Positions 11,262-54,573 of a DNA stretch of 64,000 bases are shown here, in pieces. Under the pieces are notes generated by a model. It did no database searches and was not told the DNA's origin. It was given only the letters and a program-made list of their open reading frames with translations. The stretch is from Polymyxa betae A26-41 (Eukaryota; Protista; Endomyxa: Phytomyxea), in contig RBZT01000729.1 in NCBI GenBank assembly GCA_003693705.1, forward strand, positions 68,408 through 132,407, given 5' to 3'. How positions within the stretch are numbered: position 1 is the first letter of the stretch; each line of letters begins with the position of its first letter. The position numbers were made by a program, and so were the translations under genes.

Positions 11262-11280
11262 AGTCCGTGACGGAGTCCGT
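11262..11280. promoter_or_regulatory. Palindromic element AGTCCGTGACGGAGTCCGT upstream of RACK1
   Basis: Ends 35 bp before the ATG. The identical 19-mer occurs upstream of RPS8 and the 15-nt core upstream of RPL15. Confidence 0.8.
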
Positions 11281-11314
11281 CTTTGATCGTCTTTCTCCAT
11301 TTCCCTCTAACACG

Positions 11315-12434
11315 ATGTCGGGTGAGCTATCTTACCGCGGTGAGCTGAAAGGCCATGATGGCTGGGTTACCTCTATCGCCACGACCCTGGAGGCCCCTGA
11401 TATGATCATCTCGGCTTCCCGAGACCGATCCATCATCGTCTGGAAGCTGACCCGTGGTGAACCCGAATACGGCCAGGCCGCTCGTCGTCTGAACGGACAC
11501 AGCCACTTCGTCCAGGACGTCGCCATCTCCAGCGACGGTCTGTTCGCCCTGTCCGGATCCTGGGATGGCACCCTGCGTTTGTGGGATCTGACCACCGGTG
11601 AGACCACCCGCCGCTTCGTCGGTCACGACAAGGACGTCCTGTCGGTCGCTTTCTCGGTCGACAACCGTCAGATTGTTTCCGGATCCCGGGACAAGACCAT
11701 CAACCTGTGGAACACCCTCGGTCAGCTTAAATACCGAATCACCGATGAGAACCACACCGACTGGGTACAAACAATTTTCATTTTTTTTTCACGCACTTTT
11801 GTGTTTCGTTTCAACATCGACGGCGCACATTTCGCTTTGTCTGCGCAAATTCTTTTTTCTGTCGCAATTATTTACGGAAATGTTCAAACTAATGCTGCAA
11901 ACGATCTTGTTCTAACGAATTCTTGTGCAGATCTCGTGTGTTCGTTTCTCGCCTAACATCCAGAACCCGGTTATCGTGTCGGCTGGTTGGGACAAGCTCG
12001 TCAAGGTCTGGAACCTGACCACCTGCAAGCTGCGCACCAACCTGATCGGCCACCGCGGCTACGTCTCGACCGTCACCGTCTCCCCAGATGGCTCTCTCTG
12101 CGCCTCCGGTGGTAAGGACGGTACTGCCATGCTCTGGGACCTGAACGAAGGCCGTCACCTGTCCTCGCTGGACGCCGGCGATATCATCCACGACCTGTGC
12201 TTCTCGCCGAACCGATACTGGTTGTGTGCCGCTACCGCCTCCGTCATCAAGATCTGGGATCTCGAATCCAAGGTCTGCATTGAGGAGCTCAAGATCGAAG
12301 AGAGCAAGCCGAAATCAAAGAAAGCCGTCCCGATCCAGTGCATCTCTCTGGCCTGGTCTGCTGATGGTTCGACTCTATTCTCTGGATACACTGATAACAC
12401 GATCCGGGTCTGGTCCGTCAGCTCCCGTATGTAA
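11315..12434 (+). CDS. RACK1: Receptor for activated C kinase 1 (40S ribosomal WD40 protein)
   Basis: [36 protein letters not shown]. Exons 11315-11764 and 11931-12434 around a 166-nt phase-0 intron. Confidence 0.98.
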
Positions 12435-12586
12435 GCCCAATGTTCCCAATAAACCTGCCATCGGCTGCATGTGTTGGGGGTTGCGTCTAGGGTTTTTGTG
12501 ACTTGCTCCTCGTGCGTTTCAGGGCGTCGTTCTGGGGCACCGCCCGCTGATGCGAGTTACAGCAGCGGCGCTGCGTTTAGTTGGCG

Positions 12587-13222
12587 ATGGTGCTGAACGA
12601 GTCGCTCTGCGAATCGTTCATGCGCGAGGCGCTGCGATCGGATCGATGTCGTCAGCTTTTGGAGCCGATTCCGCTCTGGAGACGGGCCCGGATCCTGTGC
12701 CGATCTTGCCAACCGGAACTCAACGCCCGCGCCTATTTCGATGCCACCACACGTGACGTGACGCTGTGCTACAATTACTTGTCCACAAAGGTCAGCAGGA
12801 AGTGGGATAGCAGTGGACGAAACCCTAATACCCTAAACCCAGGAGTCGCTAGAGGAAGCCCTCTGCCATGAACTCGTCCATTCATACGATGTCGTGGCAC
12901 GCCGTCCTCGCGCCGACTTCCGCATCTGCGGCGATCTTGCCTGCAGCGAGATCCGCGCCGCCTTCTGGGTAACAACGTCTTTTCGCCGCCGTCGCCCTTG
13001 TTGATCCAGCCTGGTCAGGGCGAATGCAGAGCGCAGACAGATCCGGACGGGAAACGCACCTGCGTGCGTCGCGTGGCGAGCAGCGCCACCGAGAATCTGT
13101 TCCCAGAGATCGGCGCTCGCGTCGTCGAGGTCATGTTCGACGCCTGCTATAACGATCAGACGCCGTGGCAATCGCCGCCCTCTCCGCCTCCGCCACCATC
13201 GTCAATAAACACGCAGCATTGA
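12587..13222 (+). CDS. ATP23: Mitochondrial inner membrane metalloprotease ATP23 (peptidase M76)
   Basis: Spliced translation contains LCHELVHSYD (HExxH), LACSEIRAA, CVRRVA..S and FDACYNDQTPW. Introns 12791-12842 and 12969-~13018. Confidence 0.9.
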
Positions 13223-13260
13223 GTCATGGCCCGGCTTCCTGTTTCCGTCATTCAACGAAA

Positions 13261-14142
13261 ATGCCGCCGATCACGACCATGCTGGTCGTCGTGCTGGCCC
13301 TGGTCCTGCTGCAGATCGCGCACGCGCAACCCTTCTATATCAACGAGACGCGCCTGCTGGCGACGGCGTCGGGCGCCGCTCCCGACCTGGTCTCGTGCCG
13401 CCTGCCCGATGACGCCATTGCCGGCACCGGCGGCCTGTTTCCGGCCCAATCGGCCAAGTCCATCTGGGTCTGGGCGTCGCTGATCGAGTACCCGGCGTAC
13501 CGGCCCGTCACCATCCAGGTCGTCGGGATGCGCAGCCGTCATGTTGTTCGGGCCTGGGATGGGCACGAATTCGACGCCGGCGTCGGCTGCGTTGCGGGCG
13601 CCTTCAATATCGGAGCGCTGCGGGATCGATTCGGTGCTGAACAGCTGCTGGCGCAGATCGTGATCGGCGACGATCTGGTCGTGTCGATTCCGTTCGCGCT
13701 CGTCTCGCAGCCCGTCTCTGTCAGTCGATTGTTGGTCGCAGCTGCCGCACGCCCCGACGACATCGCCTGCGATTTCCGGGCGGCGGCGAGACCGACCCCG
13801 ATGAACGTCACCGAGACGTCCGTCGTGTATTTCTGTGTCGATGTCGATCTGGTCGATCGGCGCCGTCCTGCCTCGATTCAGTTCGAGTTCCGATCCGGTT
13901 CGGCGGTTGTCAGTTCGTATCGCAACGATGGCGTCGATCTGATCTCTACGACGACCTTATTCATGCCGATCTCTGTCCAGCAGCTGATGACATCTGGATC
14001 ACGATCGTTCACGGCCCAGTTCCGATACGACGATCGTCTGATGGCGTCGCAGAATTTCACGCTGCAGGCCGGCGCGAGCGGCGGCGGCGGCGGCGTCCGC
14101 CTCTGCACCAGCGACTGCTCCAGTACGAACAGTACGACCTGA
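13261..14142 (+). CDS. Hypothetical secreted protein, two beta-rich domains
   Basis: Signal peptide MPPITTMLVVVLALVLLQIAHA. Intronless GC-rich ORF with N-glycosylation sequons. Confidence 0.7.
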   Translation: MPPITTMLVVVLALVLLQIAHAQPFYINETRLLATASGAAPDLVSCRLPDDAIAGTGGLFPAQSAKSIWVWASLIEYPAYRPVTIQVVGMRSRHVVRAWDGHEFDAGVGCVAGAFNIGALRDRFGAEQLLAQIVIGDDLVVSIPFALVSQPVSVSRLLVAAAARPDDIACDFRAAARPTPMNVTETSVVYFCVDVDLVDRRRPASIQFEFRSGSAVVSSYRNDGVDLISTTTLFMPISVQQLMTSGSRSFTAQFRYDDRLMASQNFTLQAGASGGGGGVRLCTSDCSSTNSTT

Positions 14143-53007: not shown

Positions 53008-53067
53008 CATCAAAACGGCTAGGGATATTTAATTTTATTCACGAGACGTGTAAAATATGAATCAGTA

Positions 53068-53568
53068 TTATACAGAAACAATATCTTGTTTGCTTAGACT
53101 AGCATTGGAGAAATCCAAGAAGAGTGATATTGCTCGAGCAGAAATCGTTGGGAACGAATATGCAAATATAGCATAAAGCGGCGCCGAATCATCTGAAGCC
53201 TTATATCGGTACAAACAGACTCCTTTGCCGCTTTCACTGTTTCCCGTTCTGCCACAAATCAGACCTGATTCGGGGTGAAATCTAGATTTCAATCTAAAAA
53301 GCAAGTATAGACAGGCAACAAGCCATAAATACCGATGAACATTGATATGATCGTCCTCAAAATCGATTCCTTTCGTCATAGCTTCTTCTCTGCCATTAAA
53401 CAGCGCTATCAAATCGAAAGCTGTCGACTTGGGCAGGGTTGTAGTTCCGAGGATAACGGCACCATCTCCATCGAATATCACCAGCGACGAGAGCTCATGC
53501 GGTAGCGACGTTTGCAGTAGCGCCTTGGCTAACCCGGAGCTGGCACCAGCCACAAGCTCGCCTAACAT
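53068..53568 (-). CDS. Small profilin-fold-like protein
   Basis: LVIFDGDG, F.GRE.AMTKGIDF, VHR|FHP, GRTG...GKGVCL, YSFPTISARAI pattern. One in-frame intron is probable. Confidence 0.45.
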   Translation of the reverse strand: MLGELVAGASSGLAKALLQTSLPHELSSLVIFDGDGAVILGTTTLPKSTAFDLIALFNGREEAMTKGIDFEDDHINVHRYLWLVACLYLLFRLKSRFHPESGLICGRTGNSESGKGVCLYRYKASDDSAPLYAIFAYSFPTISARAISLFLDFSNASLSKQDIVSV

Positions 53569-53781
53569 GCTCCTATTAGTGTGCGCAGCACGAACTAAAG
53601 TATTCGCTTATTCAGCAGACAGCAAAAATGCGTCTACTCTGTTATCGACCTTTCGTGGAGATACGAGAAAAAGAATACTGCAAACTAAAACACGCAACAG
53701 CCTACGCGAACACTCGCAAGGCAAATATTATAGAATTATCAAAAGATGTTGGTTTATCAATTGAGTTGGGACTCCACGAGT

Positions 53782-54501
53782 TTACTTGTGCTTCTTCTTC
53801 TGGATCTTCTTCATGTAGAATTCGAGCTCCTTGCCTTCGATGATGTAGCCGTCGCAACGGCCGCACTGGCCGGGTCGCGACGAGATGCAGGCGTACAGCC
53901 GACCGCTCATGAACTGCTCGGCGACCTTGGAGTCGATGACCGAGGCGGACAGACGAGCCTTCTGCTTCTTCTGGACGGCCTCGCTGACCTTGGGCAGGTC
54001 CTCGGAGGGCTTCTCGTTCTTCTTCAGACCGAGATCCTGGCCGTAGTGCTGGGTGTACCATTGGCGGAAGGGAGTGGCATCGATGGCGACAATGCAGCCT
54101 GCGATTCGAAATCAAACTCTATCAAACGACCTGCTGTGACATTTTCACCTTTGACCAAAGTCTTGGTACGAACCAATTCGTTGGAGGTGGCGTTGTAGAC
54201 GACATCAATGATACGGGTACGCCGGGTGATAACTTCGGATCCCCAGGAGAAGTTTCCGGTTTCCAGACGCAGAGCGCGGAACTTCATGTTGCCACCACGA
54301 CCACGAACCAGATGGATTCTAAGCAATCGTGAATTGGCATAGTTCTAAGAGAGCCAAAGTCGTCATCGAAGCGCACCTCTTCTCGCCGATTTTGGTGTTG
54401 GCGGCCGGGCGACCGAGCTCATATTTGCGCTTCTTCTGGTGGATCTTACGACGACCACCGGTCGCGCGACGCTTGTGGCGGGAGTCACGAGAGATACCCA
54501 T
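53782..54501 (-). CDS. RPS8: 40S ribosomal protein S8 (eS8)
   Basis: [57 protein letters not shown]. Two introns. Confidence 0.99.
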
Positions 54502-54554
54502 GGTCGGCGATCAAGCAATAAGGACTGCGAATTGTCAGAACGACGCTAATGCCA

Positions 54555-54573
54555 AGTCCGTGACGGAGTCCGT
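54555..54573. promoter_or_regulatory. Palindromic element AGTCCGTGACGGAGTCCGT upstream of RPS8
   Basis: Begins 54 bp from the ATG. Identical 19-mer to the RACK1 element but inverted relative to transcription. Confidence 0.8.

Follow-up and report, generated by a model that had tools for sequence, protein, structure and literature searches.

An alternating RCGGA element as a putative protein-binding site upstream of ribosome-synthesis genes in Polymyxa betae and other plasmodiophorids

What do the promoters of RACK1, eL15 (RPL15) and eS8 (RPS8) have in common in a 64,000-nt stretch of the Polymyxa betae A26-41 genome (contig RBZT01000729.1, positions 68,408 to 132,407; here, the window)? An earlier note, made from the letters of this window, had drawn attention to an 11-mer, ACGGA-G-TCCGT, near the start codons of the three genes and had read this palindrome as a candidate ribosomal-protein (RP) regulon element, the binding site of a dimeric transcription factor that controls ribosome synthesis in this lineage. 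We found the exact 11-mer at 11270-11280, 16950-16960 and 54563-54573 (coordinates are positions in the window unless another contig or stretch is named), ending 34 nt before the ATG of RACK1 (11315, + strand), 48 nt before that of eL15 (17009, + strand) and 61 nt before that of eS8 (54501, - strand). The 19-mer said to be shared by RACK1 (11262-11280) and eS8 (54555-54573) is indeed identical between them. RACK1 was identified by means of PDB and eL15 and eS8 by means of Pfam; eL15 is 88% identical to eL15 of Plasmodiophora brassicae. With up to one mismatch allowed, the window holds no copy of the 11-mer beyond these three (0.85 expected; none of 100 shuffled sequences had as many). As described below, the 11-mer is two-thirds of a longer element, here called element A, which very probably is a double-stranded DNA site for a protein, common to a ribosome-synthesis regulon of plasmodiophorids.

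In an unseeded search of 22 RP promoters, element A emerged as a 17-bp array of three alternating pentamers separated by one-base C/G spacers, RCGGA-S-TCCGY-S-RCGSA, often followed by CTT. Some promoters have four pentamer units, and longer variants are present in all five L7Ae-family genes picked by Pfam. The 11-mer is real, but the actual motif is this degenerate 17-mer with three half-sites rather than a palindrome. For further analyses, we used a matrix trained on the 22 RP promoters and a degenerate strict 16-mer built from the L7Ae-family gene variants. Genome-wide, the strict 16-mer had 133 matches versus 0 for the reversed control (zero-order expectation, 0.34), and the exact 11-mer had 89 versus 6 (zero-order expectation, 9.1). 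Twelve of the 89 exact 11-mers sit 34-121 nt before cytosolic RP genes and approximately 12 precede ribosome-biogenesis, polymerase or translation genes, giving about 25 copies (~28%) at ribosome-related genes; about 22 lie within six small repeat families and one tandem repeat, while the remaining copies are in coding DNA or without an assigned gene. At ~28% specificity, the bare 11-mer is a real but poor marker of the regulon.

Using gene sets picked by Pfam, we found element A in 11 of 12 promoters for RPs and small nucleolar ribonucleoproteins (snoRNPs), compared with 0 of 14 proteasome promoters and 0 of 2 mitochondrial RP promoters. Among the first eight of the RP/snoRNP promoters, seven scored at least 15 bits, as opposed to none of the 14 proteasome promoters, in which the top score was 8.3 bits (Fisher p=4.7e-5); the eighth, the P1 promoter, has a variant of A without one spacer. 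Because five of these eight genes had already been seen before the 16-mer was designed, the eight-gene test is partly circular. The fully held-out cytosolic RPs uL13, uS9, uL22 and uS12 scored 32.3, 25.7, 30.6 and 29.5 bits, respectively, versus -12.4 bits for mitochondrial uL13 and 2.3 bits for mitochondrial uL22, and the clean held-out result, over these four RPs and the three P-stalk genes, is 6 of 7. Two mitochondrial controls (L155 and L160) were left uncounted, as their promoters were not clearly reached. A match to A occurs in 0.9% of random 200-mers. Thus, the enrichment at other RP genes that the earlier note had suggested looking for is present in independently chosen genes, and A is not common to all promoters.

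Element A is not restricted to RP genes. It is also located ahead of ribosome-biogenesis and RNA polymerase (Pol) I/III genes and some translation factors, so that the RP enrichment of the element proposed earlier stands and its gene set is wider than the RPs. The scope of the regulon extends over cytosolic RPs, snoRNP, UTP and 60S factors, Pol I and III subunits and some translation factors. Genes found by means of the 11-mer and confirmed by Pfam or PDB include NOP56, BFR2/AATF, UTP14, UTP18, RPC34 and one RRM protein, as well as an Rpb2-family subunit and an MPN protein whose subtypes (RPA2 and eIF3h, respectively) were assigned by reading; TSR1, UTP21 and eIF5B were read from short N-termini only, without a database match. 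Among 40 new strict-16-mer sites that were read, 11 lie ahead of RP genes and about 10 ahead of biogenesis-type genes. For the latter, NOP58, SDA1, an Rpb1-family subunit (read as RPA1), POL5 and a tRNA-synthetase-like gene have database support, and EBP2, DUS2, UTP15 and a DEAD-box-like gene were assigned by reading only. We note that A also precedes two genes with mitochondrion-targeted-looking N-termini (L054 and L133; one a translation GTPase by eye), unlike the two mitochondrial RP genes.

The earlier note had also pointed to a TAGGGC word near each copy of the 11-mer. The word is present at 11229, 16916 and 54586, but on its own TAGGGC is no more frequent in the window than chance predicts (13 seen versus 13.8 expected) and matters only as one half of a second element, here called element B, with the pattern TAGSGS-N3-8-CATAT. 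B sits 4-33 nt upstream of A and occurs in either orientation as a block. It was found in 15 of 33 RP promoters and in none of 22 biogenesis and 14 proteasome promoters (RP versus biogenesis, p=1.1e-4); out of sample, uL13 and uS9 have it, as do RP promoters from three other organisms. The hexamer TTAGGG is enriched in RP promoters (8 of 33; p=1.6e-4) as part of B, in which the word varies to TAGCGC.

A matrix scan of the window identified a fourth strong A site at 48429-48445, flanked by a UTP4 gene and a nucleoplasmin-FKBP gene that diverge from it. Hence, the claim that the core occurs nowhere else in the window is correct for the 11-mer at up to one mismatch and incorrect for element A. 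The elements and their genes in the window, the latter searched one exon at a time, are as follows:
11229-11245, + strand: element B of the RACK1 promoter (TAGGGC ... CATAC)
11264-11280, no strand assigned: element A of the RACK1 promoter, three half-sites, 31 bits
11315-12434, + strand: RACK1 gene with one intron (11765-11930), seen spliced in RNA contigs
16916-16932, + strand: element B of the eL15 promoter
16944-16960, no strand assigned: element A of the eL15 promoter, 21.5 bits
17009-17623, + strand: eL15 (RPL15) gene, intronless
46167-48313, - strand: UTP4-like gene of several exons, start codon inferred; the database search was with the 46167-47573 frame
48429-48445, no strand assigned: element A of the divergent UTP4/nucleoplasmin-FKBP promoter, without element B, 23 bits
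48521-49780, + strand: nucleoplasmin-like plus FKBP gene, Fpr3/Fpr4-like architecture
53782-54501, - strand: eS8 (RPS8) gene, three exons (read from sequence)
54557-54573, no strand assigned: element A of the eS8 promoter, in the opposite orientation relative to the gene to that of RACK1, 32 bits
54586-54601, + strand: element B of the eS8 promoter, the block inverted relative to the gene
As a separate observation, the CD36-eL15 block (14277-17623) and the RRF-GOST-profilin-like block (49849-53607) are 32 kb apart here and adjacent in P. brassicae.

Across 53 promoters, the centre of A is located at a median of 63 nt from the ATG (interquartile range [IQR], 51-77; range, 33-134), and the two orientations occur 18 and 35 times. 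A sits at the edge of an AT-rich stretch, on its gene-proximal side, and pyrimidine content rises to about 0.6 over the last 40 nt ahead of the ATG. What was observed directly is the sequence of A, the genes that it precedes, where it lies, that it occurs in two orientations and that it is conserved. We read A as a double-stranded DNA site because its arms are one base apart, changes in them are not compensatory (Y/R covariation across the inverted repeat, 46/17/10/2, p=0.72), both orientations are used and divergent genes share one site. The earlier note had reached DNA-level action from the inverted copy at eS8. The conclusion very probably holds, but an inverted near-palindromic 11-mer alone is weak evidence for it; the two orientations of the three-unit array, the inversion of B as a block, the divergent promoters and the lack of stem covariation back it better. 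Similarly, its proposal of a regulon binding site agrees with our results; with three half-sites, the factor need not be dimeric.

Within the DNA-site reading, A could have another role at the same set of genes, namely that of a core-promoter element that substitutes for a TATA box, like the fission-yeast HomolD box, fixes where transcription starts and binds a general factor, with B being an activating sequence like HomolE. We regard this as possible but doubtful. HomolD and HomolE lie 0-32 bp apart in both orientations, with HomolD 39-52 bp before the start site (PMC10253590), and the tight position of A, its two orientations and the second element upstream of it in the RP subset parallel this arrangement; the pyrimidine content close to the ATG also fits. 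However, the HomolD sequence is present in 0 of 33 RP promoters, A ends only 24-34 nt from some ATGs, and the 17-bp three-unit array and the clusters of four to five copies in a repeat (see below) resemble the site of a sequence-specific factor. It appears far less probable that A acts in the mRNA 5' untranslated region (UTR), as a hairpin or RNA-binding site in terminal oligopyrimidine (TOP)-type translational control. A is near the ATG and has inverted repeats, and a near-palindrome reads much alike on both strands. Yet arms one base apart are too tight for a hairpin loop, the absent covariation speaks against a hairpin or other RNA structure, a single site serves two divergent genes, and B is inverted as a unit. 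What RNA contigs there are start downstream of A (at 11305 for RACK1), although contigs cannot show start sites; two raw-read runs contained no sequence of the organism.

The promoter copies are conserved. In P. brassicae, full A elements are present at eS7 (26.2 bits) and UTP18 (26.0 bits), and eL15 has the exact 11-mer, inverted (12.1 bits); A is thus kept at three of three orthologous promoters tested, while none of 24 neighbouring genes has it (all <9 bits), and the flanking sequences have diverged. B is found in the P. brassicae RP promoters (in eL15 with one deviation) and not in UTP18, which is the pattern in P. betae. In a further plasmodiophorid, from an ENA metagenome, A (14.9 bits) and B are both kept at eS7. 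In an organism that branches as sister to these on an eS7 tree (support 98/98), B is found at both eS7 and eL15; A has drifted at eS7 (15 bits) and is not clearly present at eL15 (4 bits). A metagenome scan for further eS7 loci found none. The more distant eukaryotes were without A, and three had words that by eye resemble B, which is no more than a lead. These words (TAGGC ... CATA), upstream of eS7 in L151, L169 and L170, recall the fungal IFHL/HomolE core, and two of the three loci have a short AGTCCGC word, too.

The explanation that the matches are a dispersed repeat or sequence bias without a regulatory role, for which the approximately 22 exact 11-mers in repeats could speak, has a negligible chance of being right and is refuted for the promoter copies, since the RP and biogenesis loci have flanks in common with no other locus, the gene set is functionally coherent, and A is kept at orthologous promoters of another genus. 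The repeats themselves are of several kinds. A related non-coding repeat has four to five strong A sites per ~600 nt (L042:1130-1730 on C863 and L066:1070-1720 on C491) and could be a ribosomal DNA (rDNA) spacer or a mobile-element promoter; Rfam had no match near these clusters, and the assembly is without a proper small-subunit rRNA match. In another family (L017, L024, L060 and L073, at ~1480-1530), A is inside a longer hairpin-like palindrome beside a B-like word, and the L060 copy also has an integrase-like reading frame by eye. Seven 11-mer copies lie in a 57/72-nt tandem repeat, probably coding (L052:1500-1885 on C925). Finally, 12 identical strict 16-mers, many near contig ends (C72, C128, C248, C278, C510, C608, C653, C676, C691, C696, C778 and C824), are probably one dispersed repeat.

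We suggest the following mechanism. A sequence-specific factor would read two or three RCGGA half-sites with a 6-bp period, the site being placed where an AT-rich, probably nucleosome-poor, stretch ends toward the gene, and would promote Pol II initiation just downstream of A; at divergent promoters, it would do so in both directions. RP output would be raised further by a second factor bound to B, 4-33 nt upstream, resulting in two tiers, A alone for biogenesis genes and A plus B for RP genes. Most likely, the signal lets one regulator switch on ribosome production jointly.

The likeliest class of binder may be a Zn2Cys6 protein, a candidacy that we put at somewhat below an even chance. Proteins of this family are best known from fungi. 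The candidacy is based on A being a CGG-triplet array and on such proteins, some with two tandem clusters, occurring in P. betae, P. brassicae and Spongospora. The P. betae genome has at least 17 Zn2Cys6-like domain matches, many in tandem pairs and with canonical cysteine spacing. At C574:207653-222151 and C966:31166-31399, about six small genes are clustered; most of them carry two Zn2Cys6 domains in tandem, and there are homologues in Spongospora and P. brassicae. Zn2Cys6 proteins recognize CGG pairs in an inverted, direct or everted arrangement (PMC5559640), and spaced CGG triplets are present in the A matrix, in which one outer half-site is often CGC. It is an unlikely extension that a single rhizarian Zn2Cys6 factor, bound to three alternating CGG half-sites, governs all ribosome synthesis in Phytomyxea as its master regulator (RP, biogenesis, Pol I/III and perhaps the rDNA spacer), and that B is a more ancient RP signal of the CCCTA type, with relatives in fungal IFHL/HomolE and still present in more distant protists.

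Several points weigh against the reading of A as a protein-binding site of a ribosome-synthesis regulon, or against parts of it. Some A sites are in repeats, in coding DNA or ahead of unrelated genes. The biogenesis genes were found through the motif itself, SNU13 and NHP2 being the only ones picked independently. Half-sites are often CGC and not CGG, which makes the fit to Zn2Cys6 proteins imperfect, and A may overlap the start site or 5' UTR. The B pattern was drawn from the RP set, so that its promoter counts are in-sample, and genome-wide it is only twofold over control (241 versus 116), from which it follows that B is also used elsewhere or is partly chance.

Overall, sequence comparisons support a promoter code for ribosome synthesis in plasmodiophorids that is real, conserved and two-tiered and that appears new in sequence and layout and expected in kind. 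RP motifs particular to a lineage are to be expected, and finding one is no surprise. Plasmodiophorids are obligate parasites of roots, among them clubroot and vectors of plant viruses, and they need a host to grow. Per the searchable literature, a computationally tested cis-regulatory element is new for any of them: a search on motif strings and on promoter motifs of plasmodiophorids or Rhizaria returned nothing relevant, with most subscription journals outside its coverage. It is unusual that a single element serves RP, biogenesis and Pol I/III genes and that the RP tier has an add-on, and this layout contributes a rhizarian data point on ribosome-regulon rewiring. In practice, the matrix can be used to mark gene starts and to pick out candidate ribosome-biogenesis genes, and A is a defined bait for a growth regulator.

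Compared with known ribosome-gene motifs, A is a member of none of the families listed here, in agreement with the earlier note, which had recognized no match. Rap1 consensus sites were found in 0 of 33 RP promoters; the IFHL octamer (Fhl1 site) at one mismatch in 9 of 33 (p=0.11, not enriched); plant site II (TGGGCY) in 4 of 33 (background, 0.13) and the telo-box octamer in 2 of 33, neither enriched; RRPE and PAC in 0 and 1 of 22 biogenesis promoters, respectively; and Fhl1, TRP-2 and M1BP words were absent or at background in the promoters scanned. TGACG was rejected as a known motif, its enrichment being due only to its inclusion in A. The heat-shock element consists of alternating pentamer units with a 5-bp period; A resembles it in the alternating pentamers and differs in period (6 versus 5 bp) and sequence. 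As in sites for Gal4, Leu3, Ppr1 and Pdr1, CGG triplets form inverted and everted pairs, but unlike these Zn2Cys6 sites, A has three half-sites with 3-bp gaps on both sides and a 6-bp period, and the PDRE octamer is in 0 of 55 promoters. The closest parallel in layout is HomolD plus HomolE of Schizosaccharomyces pombe, likewise a pair of elements that lie no more than about 100 bp from the ATG and occur in either orientation (PMC10253590, PMC4138321), with the upstream element, whose word contains CCCTA, in an RP subset only at a spacing of 0-30 bp and the proximal one also at non-RP ribosome genes. HomolD, however, is an octamer with an invariant AGTCAC core (0 of 33 RP promoters, exact and at one mismatch), whereas A is a 17-bp triple half-site, and HomolE (0 of 33) is a tandem CCCTA repeat, whereas B is one TAGSGS word joined to CATAT, with only the CCCTA/GCCTA-like half in common. 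Like plant site II plus telo-box, A and B form a two-element module at translation-machinery genes, and like the budding-yeast Rap1/Fhl1 (IFHL) and Candida Tbf1 regulons, they are lineage-specific cis-elements that would co-regulate RP genes; TTAGGG, the hexamer whose enrichment is described above, is a Tbf1/telo-type word. Yeast has separate elements for RP and biogenesis genes. Unlike its RP and RRPE/PAC regulons, the plasmodiophorid system has one element that covers both gene classes, and the tiers are separated by B.

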